Assembly (NCBI GenBank): GCA_033442325.1
Contig: JAWQFM010000014.1
Location: forward strand, 1,528,095 to 1,592,094
Source of the DNA: Salpingoeca rosetta
Lineage: Eukaryota; Protista; Choanoflagellata
DNA length: 64,000 nt
Direction: 5' to 3'
In this document: piece by piece, positions 514 through 55,012 of the stretch
Numbering within the stretch: the first letter of the stretch is position 1
Layout of the letters: each line of letters begins with the position of its first letter
The notes under the pieces: model-generated
Told to the model about the DNA's origin: nothing
The model's input: only the letters and a program-made list of their open reading frames with translations
Database searches by the model: none
Translations under genes and position numbers: made by a program

Positions 514-5815
<5,302 letters not shown>

Positions 5816-43191: not shown

Positions 43192-44249
43192 TCACCACGC
43201 ATCCACAACATGCTTTGGGTTGATGGTGGTGGTGGTGGTGGTTGTGGATGGTGGTCGTGCACCCTGTGTGGTGTGCTGTGACGAAGACGAAGACGAGGAT
43301 GATGATGATGACGGTGCTGTTGCTGTCGTTGGATCCGTGATGGAGTCATCTGCACGCAGTCGCTCCTGAGCAAAGTGAAGGAGGAAAAAAGAGGGGGGGG
43401 GGGCGGCGGGTTTGAAGACTGGGGTGAGGCAGTGAGGAGGGGAAGGGTAGACAGGGGAGGAGGAGAAGGGTAGACAGGGGAGGACAGGGGAGGCATCGAC
43501 GTAAACACACAGAGATCCACACACAGACACAGAGATCTACACAGAGACACACCTCGTGTCGCTTCTTGCCGACAGCCAGCTTTGGGCGACCTTTGTTGAG
43601 ACCTTCCAGCAGCACGCACGCCTTGCACAGGTCAGAGCTGGTCATATACCCGCACCGGATGCACGTGCCTGCAGCAGATGGCGGTGTGTGTGTGTGTGTG
43701 TGTGTGAGTGAGCAGTGGTGACCATGAAGCGTGCGAAATCATGACATCTAGCATCCAGTTCGCACACACGCACAATGCATCGTCATCGCTCGTGATCACC
43801 TTGGGGTGGCAGCGTAACTTCCTCTTTGACGTGCAGTGCCTCTCCACTGTGAATAATGTCTTGATGGCGCACGAATCGAGGAAAAGCGAGGGAGGGAATT
43901 GGACGACGTGTGAGAACGTCGACAAATAGGACGGGTGACCAACTTTGTGGCAGACATATGTACGGTACACAAGCACATGTACAGTACACACGCACACGCA
44001 CACGCACACACACACACACACGCACACACACACACACACATGCACACATGCACAAACACACACAAACACACACACACACACACCGATAATGGAGCTTGGT
44101 TTGATGGTCTCGAGGTCCTTGAGAAACGTGCGTGCAAAGCCGCTGTAGAGACAAAGCAGGCGGAAATGCAACACGTGAGCTGGAGGAGTGCGGTTTAAGT
44201 TTTGCTGCACCTGCTAACTCACACAACACACACACACACACGCACACGC

Positions 44250-44320
<71 letters not shown>

Positions 44321-44741
44321 CAAAGCATGCGGACCGGTATGCGTTGGGCGAGTAGGTGCACTCTGTGCTGAAGTAATCGAGCTTCTTGAAGTACGCGTAC
44401 ATGACAATCTCCTTCTCATATGTGTACTTGAACGGCTTTGATCGCGGCAGGTCCCCGCCCTCACCCGTCGTGATGGCTGCAATGCAGGAGAGGAGAGAGG
44501 GTCAAACCACAAAGTGGCACACACGCACGTGGAGAAAACGCACGAGCAAGCATAAATGTGGGCATGAGTGAGTGTCTTTGCCACGAAGGAATGGCAGCAA
44601 CACTAAGCGCGTGTGCACACAGATTCAAGTGCACAAGTACAAGATACGCAAGCACACACACAAGCACACGAGTGCACAAGCACACGAGTGCACAAGTACA
44701 CGAGTGCACAAGCACACAGGCACACACACACAGACACACAG

Positions 44742-44824
<83 letters not shown>

Positions 44825-45331
44825 NNNNNNNNNNNNNNNNNNNNNNNNNNNNNNNNNNNNNNNNNNNNNNNNNNNNNNNNNNNNNNNNNNNNNNNNNNNN
44901 NNNNNNNNNNNNNNNNNNNNNNNNNNNNNNNNNNNNNNNNNNNNNNNNNNNNNNNNNNNNNNNNNNNNNNNNNNNNNNNNNNNNNNNNNNNNNNNNNNNN
45001 NNNNNNNNNNNNNNNNATACATACAGACATACATACATACATACATACATTCATACACACACACAAGGTAATACACACACACATACACACACACAAATGC
45101 ACACAAGCACAATGCATTCATTCACACACAATGCACACACGAACACACACCTTTGCCGCCAGACGCGCCAATGGCGACAACGTCGCCCGGTGTAAACAGG
45201 TTCTCGGAAACAATGGTCTCATGGACTTCCTCCTCAAACGCAGCATAGAAGCACTCCCGGCACAGCGCAGCGCCCGTCTTGGGCCGGCGCATCGCCGCCC
45301 GGCTCGTCTCGCACCGCGCACACAACTTCAT
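43192..45331 (-). CDS. CTU1: Cytoplasmic tRNA 2-thiolation protein 1 (Ncs6); central exons missing in gap
   Basis: [36 protein letters not shown]; [40 protein letters not shown]; [25 protein letters not shown]. Confidence 0.95.
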
Positions 45332-45682
45332 CGTCCTCGTCGTCGCCCGCTGCCTGTGTGTTATGATGAAGGAAGGACAAGAGGCAGCGTGGTGCTGACG
45401 ACTGAAATCAGGGGGAATGTGGGCGGCTTGAGGAATAGCGAAAGTCTTCATATATTTTTCGGCTGTGAAGCTTGCAAGCAACCGCACACGATCGGCCCGC
45501 CCACCATCAGCACAACAACCAAAACCCAGACAACCCGACAAACCACCGAAGGCGACAGACGCACACGAAGTGCTGCGGCCGGACATCTCACCCTGCAGGA
45601 CGCGAAGAGAACGACCCAAGCACAGAAGAACAAGTCAAATAGACACGCCACTAGACTGCTTCAGCTTCAAGAACGTGTCATC

Positions 45683-46628
45683 ATGAGCGAACAATACAAC
45701 TCCTTGAAGGAGGCCAGGCTTGCTGCCGAGAAGGAGATCAAGCAACGCATGGCCAGGAGGACACACGCGCGGAAGCGGGAGGAGGAACGGCAGGATGAGC
45801 TTGACGAAGATGAGCCGCCAAACGCGAACAACACAGTCACCGTCATCACCGTCCTTGGCGCTTCCGGGGACCTCGCAAAGAACAAAGTCTACCCCGCGCT
45901 CTGGTACGTTTGACCTGTGTGACCCGTGGCTGTGTTTTCTTCGCTCGTTGAGTGACGTGCAGCAGGGTTGTTCCGCATCATCGTGTGTCCTGCAAGCAAA
46001 ACACACACACACACACAACACACACACACAACACGTGCAGAGCACAACATGCACACTTACCAGTGTTTCATCATGCCTTTGTGTGTGTACATGTACATGT
46101 ACGTGTATGTGTTTGTGCATGTGCACGTGTATGTGTTTGTGTATGTGTATGTGTATGTGTATGCCTGTACGGTTACATGCACCTGCACGTTCAACTGCAC
46201 GTACGCGTTGGATGTTGTGTCCCAGGACCATGTATCGCAAGAGCCTGATCCCGCGGTCGTCGGTGTTTGTCGGCTATGCGCGGAGCAAGTTCACCAGCGA
46301 GGAGTTTATGGGCCGCCTTCGCCCGCATCTCGAGGTCGGATGACCGCACGTGCACGTGCACATGCATTGGAAAGGGGTGGGGGTGGGAGTTGGCTGGCCT
46401 TTGGCATTTGCTGTGCGAAGTGTCATGGATGCAGGTGGCCTGATGCGGGCGGGTGGGTGTGCTAGGGTTTTGCGTGATGGTTCTTGTTGTAATGGTGTCG
46501 TGCGTCGTGCGTGTTCTGTGGCTGAAATNNNNNNNNNNNNNNNNNNNNNNNNNNNNNNNNNNNNNNNNNNNNNNNNNNNNNNNNNNNNNNNNNNNNNNNN
46601 NNNNNNNNNNNNNNNNNNNNNNNNNNNN

Positions 46629-46718
<90 letters not shown>

Positions 46719-47630
46719 TACTACGTCTGCCTGCTCCTCTCGGTCCTTGCATATTTTCATTCACACACATGCTCACTCACTCACATGCTTGCACTAACTC
46801 ACTCACTCACTCACTCACATGCACGCACTCACTCACTCACTCGCTCACATGCACGCACACATGCACACACACACACATGCACGCACATTTTAGAAGTCGT
46901 TCCGGAAGCTGAACGAATACATTGCCCTTCGTGTTGCTGCCAAGGGCAAACTGGTATGGGCAATAGCCAGCGTGATACCACTCACCCACCCAGGCGTGCA
47001 TCCGTCCATCTGTCTATCCACCCACCAATGCATCCATTCGTGGAGCACCTGCACACCTCACATTCTGTTTCGCTCCTGTGCCCTTTGTCCCCTACAGTAC
47101 AGCAATCGTATATTCTACCTTGCCCTTCCCGCCCTTCCCATCATCGAGACCGTCACGGAACATCTCAGCAAACACTGCCAGACACAGGTCGCAAACACAA
47201 GCGCAAGGCTATAGTTGTTGGCACAATATGCTTTGTCATGGCCATGAGTGCATGTACACTTGTTAACATGGATGTGTCTGACCGATTGCACGTGCACACG
47301 TGCTTGCATGTATGTCAAGAAAATTCGCCTATTCTCTTCACTCACGTGGTGGTGCGTCTTTGACAACAGTTTGGGCGGACGCAAGTCGTGGCGAACAAGT
47401 CCCTCAGCTCGGTGAGTCGTGGTGTGTTGCCAACTTCAAGTTTGCATGATGCAAAAATCTTGGAATTGTTGTCAGAAACAGGTATGGGTTGTCAGTCTCC
47501 GTACTCTTACGCACATACCTGATGCGCTCTTCTGTATCGCCCTGTCCGCCACACAGGATTTGTTGCGCGGCTTCGAGGAGGAGCAGATTTGCCGCATGGA
47601 TCATTCTCGCCCAAAAGAGATGGCACAGAA
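45683..47630 (+). other. Glucose-6-phosphate dehydrogenase N-terminal (Rossmann) domain-derived segment, with no G6PD C-terminal domain
   Basis: VLGASGDLAKNKVYPALW, FVGYARS, SFRKLNEYI, NRIFYLALP, GRTQVVANKS (canonical W.RvvvEKPFG) and FEEEQICRMDHSRPKEMAQN (canonical F.EeQIYRIDHYLGKEMVQN) occur in G6PD order. Confidence 0.85.
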
Positions 47631-50600
47631 CTGGCAGCTCGTGCTTGAAAGGCTTAGCAGCAAGCAGGACAGTGCAAGGAAAGACAAGAAGGAAGGGGTG
47701 GCACCTACACTCGCTCGGCTGGAAAGGTTTCTTGCACAGACTGAGTTGGCTGACAAGGTGAAGGACAGAGTCAGGGCCATCGCCAACAGCACTTGTGGGA
47801 AGAAAGTGAGGTGAGTGTGAACGAAGTCTCACTTTGCATGCGTTGAACCTGCAGAAAATGGTCCCTTGACCATATCTTGTCTTTTGCGCGTGCGTGTGAC
47901 TTTGCTCTATTTGCTCCCTTGCGTATGTGCGTGAAATTGCACGACTCTGACGCAACGAAATGTTTTGCTGTTGCTCAATTACTTGTCCTTGTGTGGCTTT
48001 CTTTCTTCTTTCTGTGGAACGCGATGGAATACAGCTTTGCTCAAGATCACATGGGCGACAATGGCGTGCGCGTGGTAGCCGAGGCTCTCCGAAGCAACAC
48101 GTGCATCGAGTGGCTTGAGTGCGTGATATTGCACAGCCGCCATGCACTGGATTACCTCCTTGTTGCAGGAAAGGGGTATGTCGTCCTCTCCTCCGTTCGT
48201 CTGGGTAATGCTCACGCCCTCTGGTATCCCCTGCATGTTCACTTTTCGTGCAAACAGGTTGGACAGCAATCGCATCAGCGACGACGGCGCAGTGGCGTTG
48301 GCGGAAGTGCTAAAGCGCAACGCAACCATCATGACACTTGAGTGAGTGTGGAGTTATCCTTGGTGGCGTGGGCCCAATACACACCGCGTATGGCCCGGTG
48401 GAAGTGGCTGTGAACTTGCGTATATCTCGAGTTGGTTTGCTGTGGCGTTAGCGATTGCGCTGTCCTCTGTTACTCCGTCTAATTCGGTGACGTCTCACCG
48501 TGTTTCACCACTGGCTGATTGTTTTTCTTGGGGGGGGGGGGTCTTCTTCACAGTCTGAACAACAACCGCATCCGTAATGATGGCGCTGTGGCATTGGCGC
48601 AGATGCTGAAGCATAACACAACCATCACGACGCTAAAGTGGGATGCACAGGCGGTTCGGAGCGTGTACATGAACGAACTGGAAGAAGACGTGGACCGTGA
48701 TAGTGTTGCATTAGCACACTCTGTTTTGTAACTGTGTACAACTGCACATTAACTCATGTGTTTCTTTGCACGTGTACTATCATGTGCATCCTCCTCTGGC
48801 AGGTTGGGTTTCAACTCTATCAGCGACGATGGTGCTGTGGCATTGGCAGGAGCACTAGTGCACAACACAACACTTCATGAACTCAGGTGAGTATGGGCTC
48901 CCATCCACATATCCTTGGCACAGGATGGTCGTGCCCTGACAACACGCATCTACGCAGTGACTTGAGTGGTGGTGTGAACGATGCCTGTACTGCTACGTTA
49001 CCCGCGTGGTGTGTGCTTCACTTCTTCCTTGTGTACCGATCAACTGGCGCACGTGAGCATGTTGCATGACATGAAAATTGCCTACTCACCTGGATTGACA
49101 CGCGTTTTATCTTTGTTCTCTTGCATTACTAACATGTGCACGTTCGCGTGTCAGTCTTTGGCGCAATTATATCGCCCCTGCTGGCGGTGCAGCGCTGGCA
49201 GCTGCTCTGAATCAGAATCGCACCCTCAATCAACTCTCGTACGTTGATTGGCCCAGCCCTCCTTGGTCAACTGCTTCTCTTGTGAACTTGCAGTGTAGCC
49301 TCAGCGCACCTGCTCAAACTCACGTCACACCATTCCTGCCCTCCAAACCTCAGCCTGGAGAAAAACTCGGCCGCAACTGCCAGCGCTTTTGGGGCCGCGT
49401 TGCCCGTGGACCGCGAACTTAACGCAGGAGACTGGTCAGCATGACTGGCATGATTCGTCTTCCTGTGTGCCGTGCCTTGTCATGTATCATTCCCAGCCTG
49501 TCAGATATCCTTTCACTGTTGTGCCACAATGCTTGCGTCATGCACAGGGTTCTGGATAATGAGGGGGAATCAGCCTTCAATGAAGCACGCAAGGAGAAGA
49601 TGCAGCAGCACGTGAACCTGTTTCTCGTCTGCAAGAGTGGCGATACCAAAGCGTTGATCTCCCTCATCAATCAAGACCATGCACCCGTCAACCAACAAGA
49701 CGAACAGGTGCGTATGCGTGTATTATGATTGTCCTCTGCTTGCTCCTTCATGTTTCGTGTTCACCGTGAATGAATTGTTCTCACCTCTCTTTTCTCACCA
49801 CTTATGTACTCAACGCAGGGCGACGCCCCGCTGCACGTCGCCTGCAGGCACAAACACCTCGCCATTGTGAAGCTGCTGCTAGACAAGGGCGCAGACACTT
49901 CCGTCAAGAATGCGAAAGTGGGATTTGTTTCGGGCTGATTCCTGAAGTGCAACCGTTGTCTTGCCTTGCGCTGGCCACTTCTGTCTGCCTGCTTCCCTTC
50001 TCGCCTCACCCCATGCTACTCTATCTACATCCTAACATACGCAGGGAGAGACGCCCTACGATGTGGCGACAGCTAGCGGCCACGTTGCCATCATTAGCAT
50101 TGAAGCCCTCAAGCCAGACAGCAAGCCTCAGCAGCAGCAAAAGGAGAAAGGCCCACCTGCGCCAGCCCCTTTCGCCAAATCAAAACGAGGCGGAGAGGCA
50201 GCGCAAGGCGTGAGTGAGGCAGAAAACTTGCATACTTGAAAGCAACGTGGGTGTTTGTGCGCATCTCCTCGCTTACCTCTTTCATGGCTTTCATACTCTG
50301 TTCCCCAGCACAATGTCTCACACCACCGCATCACCATGCCTTGCTCTGCCTGCACCAGCCCGAGAAGGCGCGCAGGGAGCGTCTCCAGCAGCGCATGCGG
50401 GAGGTCGTTGCGCGCTTCAACGCCACCATGGCGGGCAGGGCCAAGCTCATCTTCATTGGCCAGGGGCGCGCCGGCAAGACCAGCACGTTCCACTCACTCA
50501 TGGGCCACACCTTCAACAAGCATGAGCACTCCACGCCTGGCGCCGCGACCGCCGACCTCGCCGTCATTGTCGAGTCCATGGACATCCATGACTGGCAGGT

Positions 50601-51498
50601 GCGTCAGCTAAGCTTATGCGTTTCTGTGAAATGTGCGACGCATGCGTGAAGGGAAGTGTCGTGAGTGACTCGTGATTTGCAATGCGCAGCACAGCGCAAA
50701 CACACACACACACACACACAACCTTGCTTCTCCTCCTCACCTTTGCAGGAGCTGGATGCGGAGATCTCGGAGCTGATGCGCAGTCTCTGCGGCACGGCGC
50801 TGGCGCAGGACTCCGGCGTGAACTTGCAGATGAAGCAGGCGATGATGAAGGCGAAAGCCGACCTGGAGAGCCGAATCGTTCGGTACCAGCAGCAACAGAA
50901 GCAGAGCGAAGCACTGAAGACCAGGCCAAGGGCAAGGACTACCAATCTGAAGCAGAAGGCAACCCCGAAGGAAACACAGTCACAGCAACCATTCCATGAG
51001 TCACCAACGATCGTCCCCGAGCCCACCAAGGCGTCTCATGCCCCAGCATCTGCATCCAAGCAGCAGGTCACAATCGGTCCTTCCAGCAAAGGTGATACTG
51101 CTTCCCACGACAACGAAGAACACGGCAGCCGCGCCACCGCAACCGGCATGTCTACGGAGGAGATGGAGAAGGCGATCAAAGAGCTTAACGTGGATGCCGT
51201 CATGGGCGAGGGCAAAGCACGGGTCACTTTCAAGGTGTTTGACTTGGGCGGCCAGTCCACCTTCTACATCTTCCACCCTTTCTTCCTCACAGAGTGAGTG
51301 CGGCAGTGCGTGTGTACGTGTGTGTGTGCGCGTGTGTCTGTGTGTTTGAGTGTGTGTGCGTGTGTGTGCGTGCATTGTGTGTCTGTGTATCTGTATGTAT
51401 GTATGTATGTGTGCGTGTATGTGTGTGTGTGTGTGTGCGTGTTTGCCTGCTTGCAGTCCCTCCACCACCTCTCCTCCATTCACCTCTCCCTTCATCAC

Positions 51499-51536
<38 letters not shown>

Positions 51537-52103
51537 GCAAGGACTACCAATCTGAAGCAGAAGGCAACCCCGAAGGAAACACAGTCACAGCAACCATTCC
51601 ATGAGTCACCAACGATCGTCCCCGAGCCCACCAAGGCGTCTCATGCCCCAGCATCTGCATCCAAGCAGCAGGTCACAATCGGTCCTTCCAGCAAAGGTGA
51701 TACTGCTTCCCACGACAACGAAGAACACGGCAGCCGCGCCACCGCAACCGGCATGTCTACGGAGGAGATGGAGAAGGCGATCAAAGAGCTTAACGTGGAT
51801 GCCGTCATGGGCGAGGGCAAAGCACGGGTCACTTTCAAGGTGTTTGACTTGGGCGGCCAGTCCACCTTCTACATCTTCCACCCTTTCTTCCTCACAGAGT
51901 GAGTGCGGCAGTGCGTGTGTACGTGTGTGTGTGCGCGTGTGTCTGTGTGTTTGAGTGTGTGTGCGTGTGTGTGCGTGCATTGTGTGTCTGTGTATCTGTA
52001 TGTATGTATGTATGTGTGCGTGTATGTGTGTGTGTGTGTGTGCGTGTTTGCCTGCTTGCAGTCCCTCCACCACCTCTCCTCCATTCACCTCTCCCTTCAT
52101 CAC

Positions 52104-52143
<40 letters not shown>

Positions 52144-55012
52144 AGGTACGCGGTGTACCTGCTGGTGTTCTCCATGAAGGACCTGCTGCACCAAGATGAG
52201 AGCAAGCGAGCTGAATCGTGGGAGTTTATGGAGCACTGGCTCTCCTCTCTCCACCTCCACGCCAAGGGCGCACCCGTCCTCATCGTCGGCACGTTTGCTG
52301 ACAAGATTATCGAGCGGAAGCAGCACGAGGCCATCTCACGCGACATCTACAGCCGCTTGCGCCACAACCCCGCTTTCCCTGGCGTCATTCACAACGACAA
52401 ACACGGCCTGTGGTTCTGGCCCGTCGACAACACCAAGTCTATCAACGACACCATGATCCAGGACCTGCGCCAGACCATCTCCTCCACAGCACTGGCGCAG
52501 GAGTACGTGAGCCAGGAAGTGGCCGTCCCTTACCTCCACCTCTTCGACAAACTCCACGCCATCGCCCGCGACGAGAAGCGACCTCTGCTTACGTTTGACG
52601 AGGTGGTGGACATTGCGCGCACGTGTGGGCTGCGCACGCGTGACGAGACGAGAGCCTGCCTGCAGTTCCTGCACCTGTACTCAATGGTGCTGTGCTATGA
52701 CCACGTGCCAGGCATGGAGGACTATGTGATCCTGAGTCCGCAGTGGGCGGTGGACACGATGGCCCGCGTCATCCGCAACTTTGATCTGCACCGCGATGTG
52801 CGCGATGGCGAGGCGAGGGCCGTTGGCGCACAGCTGTGGGACGACCTGGTTGACCGTGGCATCCTGCATCGCCGCCTGCTGGATGTGCTGTGGAACGACG
52901 TGGACAGCAACTTGGTACTGCCATTCCTGTGCTTGATGATGCAGTACGGGCTGTGTGTTGAGTACTCTCCACCCAAGCTGGTGGACAGTCGCAGAGCACT
53001 CGCACGCACCAACTCTGGCCACGGTGACAACGCTACAGCCAAGGGCAGCAAGGGCAGCAGTCCCGGGCACCAGCAGTACCTGGTCCCTGCCATCCTGCCG
53101 ATGACGATTCGCCACAACAACAGCGAGATGGCATCCGTGTCACTTAGCACGACGGCAGCACAGCAGGTCAACCCATACGTTGGTTATGAAGAGAAGACAG
53201 CCTACGTCACCTTCAGCCTGAAGCAGTTCAAGCGAAGTGCGAGCGTGCGAGTTGAAGATGTGCAACAAGCGTCATTCCTGCCAGAGGGGTTGTTCACCGT
53301 TGTGCTGGCCCATGTGATGATGCATGCACAGCACGGTGCATCACAGGAGCCCAAGCTGAGCCGCACCCACGCCGTGTGCTTCATGGAGTCCACCAAGCTG
53401 GAGCTGCAGCTTGTGCCGGCTGTTGGCGGCATCAAGATGAAGATCACGAGTGCACAGCCACGTGCTGTGCTGCACATGCTGCACAGCATGATCAGCGAGG
53501 CCGCCAGAGAGCGCTACCCCGAGCTGAAGAGCAGCCTGCTGCTGCCGTTCGACGACAAGACGCTGCTGTTCTTCGAGGACATGCTGCACCACCACAAGCG
53601 CAAGCAGGACATGTGGGTGGACGAACAGCTGCTGTCACCCGATGACCTGGTCACCAAATACGGCCCTCTTCTGCCCGTCCTTGGCCTGCAGGACAAGTAC
53701 GACGTCTTCATCAGCTACAGGTGAGACGTGTGTGTGTGTGTGTGTACGTGTGTGTGTGTGTGCGTGTGTGTGTGTCTGCCTGCCTGTCTGTCTGTCTGTC
53801 TGTCACTTCCATCCACCACCACTGCTGCTCCACACCACTCCACCTCACATCCCCCTTCTCCCGCCGCCACCATCACCACCTCAGGCAACGCGCCAGCAGT
53901 GGGCTGGTGATGGCGCTGCACCCGCGCTTGGAGCAGCGCAACCTGGTTGCGTTCCTGGACGCCAACAACCTGGAGACGGGCCTCAACTTCAAGTTGTCGT
54001 TCATGACGGCGATTGGGCTGAGTCTGGTGGCCTGCCCCATCGTCTCTGCTGCCACCATCATGCAGATGAGGCAGCTGCAGCACAGCGACTACTGCGACAA
54101 CGTGCTGCTGGAGTGGATGACGATGCTGGCGCTGCGCGAGTACCAACGGGCGCACGAAGAAGATGAGGAGCAACATGCCAAGATTCGCCTTCACCGCGTC
54201 GTGCCTGTCATTGTTGGCAGCGCATGGCACAATGTGAACGACAGCAGCATGAGCAAGGCCGAGGTGAGCGAGTACGACTCGTTTGACCGCCTGAAGCGGC
54301 TGACAACGAAGCTGCCGGATGTTGTCAGCAAGGAGACGGCAGCAGCCCTGGACCAGTACTTTTCGCAGGTGCTGCACTTACCACCACCACAGCAGCACAA
54401 GAGCGTGCGCGAGACTGTGCTGTCGCTGTTTGACATTGACGCCGTGGTTGTATTGGACGCCACTGAGGACCGCACGTCGCAGCTGCGCGACATTGCAGAG
54501 AAGGTGCGCCAAGTTGTCGTCTCTGCCAGGAGTGACGAGCAGGCAGGGAATGGAGCAGCAACTGCACGTCGTTCCACGCAGGTATGCGTGCTGTGCTGTG
54601 CCCTTTGCACATGTGTTTGCATACATGCACGCATGCTCAATCTCTTCCTCTTCCACCACTTGGCGCTCACGCTGTGCTTCACGCACCCGCTTGGTAGCCT
54701 ATCCTGCAATCGTCCTTGTCATACTCCACCACTGCCACAACTCCTGCTCCACCACCACCTGCCACCCCATTGGCCTCTTCCTCCTCCTCGCCATTTGAGC
54801 CCGAACTGGCGGCATGGCTCACACAACACTCGCTGCTGCCACACGTAAAGCAAGCGCTGGTGGAGCACTGCATCGACTCCCTGGAGGTGCTGGTGGGGGT
54901 CGTGCGTGAGGGCTTACTCACCACACAGGCACTTGTTGCAAGCGGCGTGCCGATGGGTGCTGCGTTTAAGCTGGTGCAAAAAGCGAAACGTAGTGCGGAT
55001 GGCAATGCATAG
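45683..55012 (+). CDS. Chimeric Roco protein: degenerate G6PD NADP-binding domain - RI-type LRRs - ankyrin - Roc GTPase - COR - TIR - SAM-like
   Basis: Phase-compatible exons 45683-45903, 46226-46334, [gap], 46894-46953, 47098-47187, 47370-47411, 47557-47810, five 84-nt LRR exons (48035-49238), 49354-49434, 49548-49707, 49819-49917, 50045-50209, 50359-50598, 50749-51293, 52146-53720, 53885-54581, 54698-55012. Roc GQGRAGKTS / FDLGGQ / VGTFAD; COR VILSPQW; TIR YDVFISYR..AFLD..NVLLEW. Confidence 0.8.
50931..52140 (+). repeat. 605-bp direct tandem duplication inside the Roc-coding region (partial exon plus intron)
   Basis: 50931-51535 recurs at 51536-52140; the ORF track shows identical translations offset by 605 nt. 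Confidence 0.92.

Follow-up and report, generated by a model that had tools for sequence, protein, structure and literature searches.

A Roco-TIR gene of Salpingoeca rosetta fused to the copied front half of a glucose-6-phosphate dehydrogenase gene

PTSG_05418, a gene of the choanoflagellate Salpingoeca rosetta, is a Roco-TIR family member with an integrated enzyme domain, the front half of a glucose-6-phosphate dehydrogenase (G6PD), which judging from its motifs is catalytically dead. The gene lies on the + strand of a 64,000-nt stretch of the genome (scaffold C14, 1528095–1592094; hereinafter the window), and the genome searched comprises 55.4 Mb in 68 scaffolds. The analysis establishes the gene structure, the origin of the G6PD part, the loss of its catalytic motifs, the splicing of exons C to F and of exon F to exon G, and the family context. 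That the chimeric gene is genuine and expressed, and that its origin and mechanism are as set out below, is our best explanation as a whole, and we hold it with moderate confidence. Choanoflagellates are the sister group of animals.

Structure of PTSG_05418

The gene model was assembled by hand from GT-AG sites and reading-frame continuity. It contains 20 exons, from an ATG at 45683 to a stop at 55012, and encodes a product of 1690 aa. The conceptual product matches the public hypothetical protein PTSG_05418 (P0154) at 100%. All 19 introns are GT-AG and phase-compatible through the stop at 55012. A first-pass annotation of this DNA had proposed that G6PD-like exons are joined to a Roco gene without stop or frameshift and that every junction from 46894 to the stop keeps phase; both proposals are borne out by the 20-exon model. 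The exon ends that it gave were right to within two bases, exon A ending at 45903 and not at 45905. It had further stated that it knew of no described protein of such architecture. Our literature search found no paper mentioning PTSG_05418 and, among the papers listed, none on choanoflagellate Roco families, yet the protein is already in databases with PF00479 precomputed.

The 5' exons are homologous to the first seven exons of a G6PD gene. Exon A (45683–45903) contains the start codon, about 39 locus-specific codons, G6PD exon-1 homology from 45799, and the GASGDLA motif. Exon B (46226–46334) is the homologue of G6PD exon 2 and carries GYARS; an assembly gap (46529–46628) occupies the expected site of the exon-3 homologue. 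Exon C (46894–46953) and exon D (47098–47187, with NRIFYLALP) are the homologues of exons 4 and 5. Exon E (47370–47411), the homologue of exon 6, is 30 nt shorter than its counterpart but in frame, and has lost EKPFG. Exon F (47557–47810) is the fusion exon. It starts as G6PD exon 7 (RMDHSRPKE, up to 47639) and continues from about 47686 as the first coding exon of a Roco gene.

The rest of the gene encodes the Roco-TIR body. Six exons of RNI-type LRRs (48035–49434; Pfam LRR_6) are followed by three exons of ankyrin repeats and linker (49548–50209; Pfam Ank_2 and related families, aa 443–529) and two Roc GTPase exons (50359–51293; Pfam Roc) with the P-loop GQGRAGKT, a long low-complexity insert, and DLGGQ. 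A large exon (52146–53720) encodes the end of Roc, COR-A, a weak COR-B, and the first TIR strand (YDVFISY). The TIR exon (53885–54581) contains the catalytic Glu in NVLLEW, and the last exon (54698–55012) encodes a Pro/Ser-rich linker and a SAM-like five-helix bundle before the stop.

Origin of the G6PD-derived exons

The genome contains a canonical G6PD gene on scaffold C3 (GASGDLAKKK, EKPFG, RIDHYLGKE), an H6PD-like gene on the same scaffold, and a second full-length G6PD gene on scaffold C1 (locus L013, C1:2236000–2245999). The C1 gene is colinear with the window exon by exon, introns included, and is the intact paralogue that the first-pass annotation had expected elsewhere in the genome. 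Specifically, window 45799–46527, 46683–47189, and 47572–47639 match L013 3763–4406, 4544–5063, and 5478–5545, respectively. The G6PD part of the window arose by partial duplication, as genomic DNA, of this C1 paralogue (hereinafter the parent), and comprises its first seven exons together with their introns. A whole-genome search for a third copy of the G6PD-like exons, for example upstream of other Roco paralogues, found none besides the parent locus.

Identity to the parent is not uniform along the copy. Before the gap, the shared part of exon A is 83% identical in an end-free alignment (6 differences in the 74 nt from 45830, or 92%), the intron between A and B 92%, exon B 96%, and the intron from there to the gap 98%. 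Beyond the gap, identity is 81%, followed by 93% for exon C, 87.5% for the intron between C and D, and 85% for exon D. The introns between D and E and between E and F cannot be aligned to the parent, and the start of exon F is about 78% identical. Synonymous divergence from the parent is 0.15 in exons A–C and rises to more than 1 in exon F. Because identity drops stepwise from 98% to undetectable, we read the copy as an old partial duplication whose 5' part was later converted by the parent. A recent single duplication was rejected on account of the same stepwise fall.

The pairwise ratio of nonsynonymous to synonymous substitution (dN/dS) against the parent is 0.15–0.37 per exon and 0.27 overall, which is lower than would be expected of a freely drifting copy. 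The canonical C3 gene, used as an outgroup, polarised only conserved positions; at 35–80% identity per exon it is too distant for a lineage-specific dN/dS.

The first 39 codons of PTSG_05418 and its leader are locus-specific. The first of these codons (45687–45736) are 88% identical over 50 nt to positions 2628–2677 of a locus on scaffold C10 (L026, C10:566500–571500), an exon of a charged coiled-coil open reading frame (ORF); this exon is either a possible source of the locus-specific N-terminus or a chance match.

The parent itself is atypical. It reads GASGYLA, with Tyr (TAT; L013 ~3822–3842) at a position that is Asp in 48 of 48 aligned G6PDs, in the C3 gene, and in the window copy. It is expressed, as RNA reads carry the parent variants, and it may be a functionally shifted G6PD.

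The fusion point and the start of translation

The first-pass annotation had placed the switch from G6PD to non-G6PD sequence inside exon 47557–47810, and the breakpoint indeed falls there, in the interval from 47639 to about 47686. At the DNA level the window resembles the parent no further than 47639, and resemblance to the first exon of Roco paralogues sets in at about 47690–47718. What the Roco family has as its first coding exon is here the second half of exon F together with its donor site, and this half is present ahead of about 20 paralogues.

The fusion gene lacks the start codon of the family. Roco paralogues start MSGGEKRAREEVE..., and their Met1 aligns with K218 of P0154 (AAG, 47686–47688), because residue 12 of ten paralogues (beginning MSGGEKRAREEVEALLAQTK...) aligns with residue 229 of P0154. 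The position of the family ATG thus reads AAG, and therefore translation must begin in G6PD-derived sequence. The in-frame Met codons before the LRRs are M1, M188, and M196, of which M188 and M196 are within G6PD-derived sequence.

The assembly gap

The gap at 46529–46628 coincides exactly with the position of exon 3 in the parent (L013 4412–4489; 78 nt or 26 codons, phase 0 to 0), and both of its flanks are colinear with the parent locus. The end of exon B and the start of exon C are both in phase 0, and the reading frame is therefore kept with or without the gap exon. The public model, to be used with the caution that it skips the exon hidden in the gap, is nearly right but probably short of these ~26 residues. 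The G6PD residues expected from the gap exon include a core β strand, and human residues 83–109 are the stretch left unaligned.

A DNA contig of run X1 extends 167 nt into the gap, reading an acceptor site and then exon-3-like letters. The same contig has the window's exon-B letters but the parent's intron letters. It was downgraded as proof of the gap exon, as it may be a chimeric graph path through shared 31-mers.

That mixed contig, the sole run X1 DNA contig there, could also be taken to mean that the stretch 45017–46528 was misplaced, or collapsed with the parent G6PD, during scaffolding, in which case exons A and B would not lie upstream of the Roco gene. The 1.5-kb contig 45017–46528 is flanked by two gaps, and over its final 190 nt it shares 98% identity with the parent. 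It is, however, anchored on the left, where exons of a minus-strand CTU1-like gene continue across the gap at 44825–45016, and on the right the G6PD exon order goes on with the gap exactly at exon 3. Moreover, these exons are held by only two genomic loci, and the post-gap exons require a 5' partner. We consider a scaffolding error highly improbable.

Transcription and splicing

Read and contig placement covered 45301–51300. In run X4, RNA-like contigs include all splices from exon C to exon P. Specifically, exons C, D, E, and F are spliced in one 519-nt RNA-like contig (depth 22), of which ~448 letters lie on the window, and the last 28 nt of exon F, exon G, and the following exons through P are spliced in one 985-nt RNA-like contig (depth 10.9). 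The splices of the LRR and ankyrin-repeat exons are among them. The first-pass annotation had considered transcripts starting downstream of 47630; such a start is contradicted by the splicing of C-D-E-F and the joining of F to G. The alignment of the 519-nt contig ends at the acceptor 46893/4 and does not run into the intron, and its ~71 unplaced letters presumably come from an unseen upstream exon. Apart from the intron between F and G (see below), introns are nearly absent from run X4, so the retention of that intron is not DNA contamination. In run X15, raw stranded reads on exons C, D, and F have the orientation of the Roco exons, opposite to the CTU1-like gene.

The 5' end is also represented in RNA. 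An RNA-like contig of run X4 covers 45467–45859 at depth 16 with zero differences. The stretch 45520–45829 is present at 0.90–1.00 in each of the four RNA-like runs of study P2, and at 1.00 in a single run from another study. Between 45418 and 45682 there is no ATG, so that at least 265 nt ahead of the start codon are free of one, and 45467–45682, in the promoter region shared with the CTU1-like gene, is the probable 5' leader.

Several observations weigh against a single transcript and protein that begin at exon A. We found neither reads nor contigs that bridge the assembly gap from exon A or B to the exon inside it or to exon C. On exon B, every raw RNA read (11 of 11 per raw run) carries the parent's bases at the four positions that differ, and these reads continue into parent exon 3. 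Raw-read depth is nil on the unique part of exon A, whereas exons C–F have ~3x in run X15; at such low counts, an under-representation of exons A and B in raw RNA has only a weak signal behind it (P about 0.05–0.1). A collection of 5.8 billion proteins yielded no transcript-derived ORF of the 5' part, only distant G6PD fragments of at most 45% identity. About 60% of the exon-F signal in run X4 retains the intron between F and G (47811–48034; depth 17.4, compared with 10.9 for the spliced form), which places a stop right after exon F. Furthermore, exons A–D may owe their open frame and splice sites simply to gene conversion by the working parent. The identity gradient fits such conversion, which weakens the dN/dS argument for exons A–D and leaves exons E and F and the unique 5' codons as the evidence of constraint on the fusion copy.

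The exon-B reads, the nil depth on exon A, the retained intron, and the lack of a 5' ORF in the protein collection would fit a hand-built model that reaches too far upstream. Exons A and B, perhaps with the gap exon, would then form a separate short transcript or an untranslated leader, and the Roco protein would start within exon F, at M188 or M196, or else at M265, with at most ~30 G6PD-derived residues; some annotated paralogues do begin within the LRRs. However, C-D-E-F are spliced in frame, and ~71 nt of the contig presumably belong to an unseen upstream exon and not to the intron. In addition, every RNA-like run of study P2 contains the unique 5' region, with a depth similar to that on exons C–F, and the first AUG of such a transcript would be the one at 45683, in frame throughout and behind a clean leader. 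We therefore regard the shorter protein as unlikely, and we infer that exons A, B, the gap exon, and C are linked in one transcript and that the PTSG_05418 protein is produced.

Translation of the intron-retaining form would yield a free-standing G6PD_N-like protein of ~260–285 aa. At the Roc exons (50301–51300), RNA reads and contigs come mostly from paralogues, with many fixed differences and foreign loose ends. Because paralogue reads dominate, RNA depth there is uninformative on the expression of PTSG_05418.

The G6PD-derived domain has lost its catalytic motifs

Pfam G6PD_N matches PTSG_05418 in two stretches with 72.3 bits (E 1e-19; cut-off 22.1 bits). Exon A scanned by itself is matched by G6PD_N as well. 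The module is ~215 aa long as annotated and ~240 aa including the exon hidden in the gap. From aa 59 to 149, all but three of the columns that are at least 80% conserved among 48 homologues are kept. These include GASGDLA, K68, P71, GYARSK, R134, and FYLALP; GASGDLA and GYARSK are identical to columns invariant in the 48 homologues.

The catalytic side of the enzyme has degenerated. EKPFG, in which Lys and Pro of G6PD contact coenzyme and substrate, reads NKSLS. The substrate-binding motif RIDHYLGKE, which is RMDHYLGKE in the parent, reads RMDHSRPKE. There is no Pfam match to G6PD_C (PF02781) on PTSG_05418, and parent homology stops at 47639, so the catalytic His is absent. With EKPFG and RIDHYLGKE lost, and nothing left of the C-terminal domain for catalysis and dimerisation, the module is a catalytically dead Rossmann domain and cannot be a dehydrogenase. 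Coenzyme binding is the only G6PD function that could survive in it.

An AlphaFold2 (AF2) model of aa 45–262, with a predicted local distance difference test score (pLDDT) of 82.5, contains a Rossmann-type sheet in which one strand is replaced by a long helix, corresponding to the missing exon. Its best structural match is G6PD (E 5e-9).

Possible roles of the G6PD-derived domain

By analogy with the Roco family, the LRRs, the ankyrin repeats, and the N-terminal modules would keep the Roc-COR GTPase switch off. Activation and SAM-assisted clustering would bring TIR domains together, and the clustered TIR domains would cleave NAD+ to cyclic ADP-ribose (cADPR). We infer this mechanism for PTSG_05418 from its relatives. 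As for the new N-terminus, the copied G6PD segment was inserted between the promoter of the CTU1-like gene and a Roco family member. The most likely reading, to which we give about an even chance, is that the module is a tolerated N-terminal passenger, chiefly supplying promoter, start codon, and leader.

The conserved coenzyme side suggests another role, in which the Rossmann domain binds NADP+/NADPH and allosterically gates Roc-COR and the TIR NADase, in the way that the ARM domain of SARM1 senses nicotinamide mononucleotide (NMN) and NAD+. Nearly all strongly conserved coenzyme-side columns are kept, the fusion copy has the invariant Asp of GASGDLA where the parent has Tyr, dN/dS is 0.15–0.31 in exons A–D, and a Rossmann-like fold is predicted. 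Proteins that combine TIR with an NAD(P)-binding Rossmann domain are also listed in Volvox, Chrysochromulina, and Pelagomonas (Table S2, bioRxiv 10.64898/2026.04.20.719644), so the pairing is not unique in principle. On the other hand, the EKPFG position has been reduced to NKSLS, the β+α domain that buttresses the Rossmann domain is wholly absent, and the conservation of exons A–D is explicable by gene conversion from the parent. The fusion is also confined to one gene in one species: a word-index search of the 5.8 billion proteins for G6PD_N together with Roc or TIR in another long protein found none but PTSG_05418, with no orthologue or second instance, and the other G6PD fusions have metabolic partners. 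An NADP sensor is thus rather improbable.

Loss of catalytic motifs with retention of the surface fold, which is usual for decoys, would also fit an integrated decoy: the dead fragment would mimic cellular G6PD, and a pathogen or prey effector targeting G6PD would trip the Roco-TIR receptor, as in plant nucleotide-binding leucine-rich repeat receptors with integrated domains (NLR-IDs). The family is large, fast-expanding, and NLR-like, with swappable end modules, and, as in NLR-IDs, the host-derived domain is present in one member and absent from its paralogues. However, no G6PD-targeting effector is known from interactions of choanoflagellates with microbes, the Roco family has no demonstrated immune role, and the fragment derives from the atypical C1 paralogue instead of the canonical C3 gene. 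We consider a decoy very unlikely.

Both the sensor and the decoy are speculation, with the conserved coenzyme fingerprint as their sole support. The broader reading, that PTSG_05418 couples TIR signalling to the redox or pentose-phosphate state of the cell or to an attack on that state, appears doubtful.

The Roco-TIR body and its family

The first-pass annotation had described the body as LRR-ANK-Roc-COR-TIR-SAM. Pfam finds the LRR (LRR_6), ankyrin, Roc, and COR-A parts, while TIR_2 falls below its cut-off and what points to SAM is the predicted fold (Z ~7). Specifically, five of the six LRR exons are 84 nt long and one is 81 nt, all in phase 2 and each encoding one repeat. Roc scores 59.6 bits, above the cut-off, and its P-loop and DLGGQ are present. 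COR-A scores 56.6 bits on the whole protein, also above the cut-off, and 59.6 bits on the exon alone; COR-B is weak (E 0.17). Roc is directly followed by COR, as in Roco proteins.

TIR_2 scores 22.7 bits (E 1.5e-4; cut-off 28 bits). Over 244 aa, the TIR of PTSG_05418 is 65% identical to that of PTSG_12359 (F2UB80, P0160), a recognised and assayed TIR. F2UB80 has 1352 aa, with TIR at 1034–1255 and catalytic Glu1118 (Table S4, bioRxiv 10.64898/2026.04.20.719644), and the Glu of NVLLEW aligns with Glu1118. An S. rosetta TIR is reported to make cADPR in E. coli, in a 2026 preprint (bioRxiv 10.64898/2026.04.20.719644). An enzymatic TIR output of PTSG_05418 is plausible, because the paralogue TIR, 65% identical and with the same catalytic Glu, makes cADPR.

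In the C-terminal region, neither SAM_1 nor SAM_2 was matched by Pfam at E values up to 1, and a sequence search of the PDB found nothing. AF2, with 20 paralogues as alignment, predicts a five-helix bundle for the last 79 aa (pLDDT 88). The top seven matches among solved structures are all SAM domains (Z 6.4–7.2, root-mean-square deviation (RMSD) 2.2–4.5 over 63–71 aa), five of them with RMSD of 2.2–2.8 over 63–68 residues. No Foldseek E-value reaches significance, and a Z of less than 8 may reflect a common helical arrangement; the domain is therefore called SAM-like on the strength of the predicted fold.

The Roc-COR exon has 48 genomic matches, of which ~37 are full-length, with 70–92% identity, pointing to a family of about 40 Roco genes in S. 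rosetta. Most of the annotated members have LRR-ANK-Roc-COR-TIR in common, together with one and the same helical module at the C-terminus. One member, PTSG_02681 (P0002), has PNP_UDP_1, of the nucleoside phosphorylase superfamily, at aa 1270–1492 downstream of COR and no TIR by Pfam. PNP_UDP_1 is another swapped effector-type module in the family.

Comparison with known systems

PTSG_12359 and other S. rosetta Roco-TIR paralogues have the same LRR-ANK-Roc-COR-TIR-SAM-like body as PTSG_05418, which alone among them has a G6PD-derived N-terminus and has lost the family start codon. With G6PD (the C1 parent; human 1QKI and 2BH9), PTSG_05418 shares seven homologous 5' exons with their introns, GASGDLA, GYARS, and FYLALP, and a Rossmann match of the AF2 model. 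It differs in lacking G6PD_C and the catalytic His and in its degenerate EKPFG and RIDHYLGKE.

Brown-algal LRR-ROCO candidate immune receptors (PMC3341825, PMC11378527) resemble the PTSG_05418 family in being kinase-less, large, and lineage-specific. In Ectocarpus ROCO genes, each 72-nt exon encodes one LRR, with symmetrical phases that allow exon shuffling (PMC3341825). PTSG_05418 likewise has one repeat per exon and symmetrical phases, its exons being of 84 nt and phase 2. The S. rosetta LRRs are RNI-like and 28 aa long, the family has ankyrin repeats as well as TIR and SAM-like outputs, and the expansion is an independent one in an animal relative.

SARM1 (ARM-SAM-SAM-TIR) also combines TIR, a SAM-type oligomerisation module, and an N-terminal domain that, in PTSG_05418, would potentially bind a pyridine nucleotide. 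In PTSG_05418, however, TIR precedes the SAM-like module, Roc-COR and LRR/ANK lie between, and the putative sensor is a Rossmann fold in place of ARM repeats. As in plant NLR-IDs, one member of an expanded receptor-like family has captured an inactive fragment of a host protein; the switch is Roc-COR instead of NB-ARC, and the likeness concerns domain make-up.

About 40 Roco-TIR genes with swappable end modules look like an innate-immune repertoire whose switch is a GTPase and not NACHT or NB-ARC. PTSG_05418 is an example of how such a family gains a module: a partial segmental duplication of a housekeeping-type gene became joined in frame within the first coding exon and was later part-homogenised by gene conversion. 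If its G6PD-derived domain binds NADP(H), it would be a natural case in which the fold of a metabolic enzyme has been put to use in gating a TIR NADase; if it does not, the gene is still a clean and datable birth of a chimera. Genetic tools exist for S. rosetta.

Neighbouring gene and minor features

Upstream of PTSG_05418 lies a CTU1/NCS6-like gene (cytoplasmic tRNA 2-thiolation protein) on the minus strand. It starts at ~45335 and has further exons at 44217–44501, 43635–44213, and 43349–43738. The two genes are divergent and have in common a bidirectional promoter region of ~350 nt.

P0154 and its paralogues are named 'non-specific serine/threonine protein kinase' in UniRef. No Pfam kinase domain was found in the four members scanned, and LRRK-type Roco proteins are the apparent source of the name.

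A 606-nt tandem repeat (50929–51534 and 51534–52139, 100% identity) takes in some of the Roc insert, the end of the exon, and the start of the intron, and its second copy lies inside the annotated intron. DNA depth in run X1 is 7.6 on the unique part of the first copy, compared with 13.2 on flanking single-copy sequence, and the second copy is probably an assembly artefact. If real, the second copy, with an AG acceptor at 51534–35, would splice in frame as an extra 363-nt exon.

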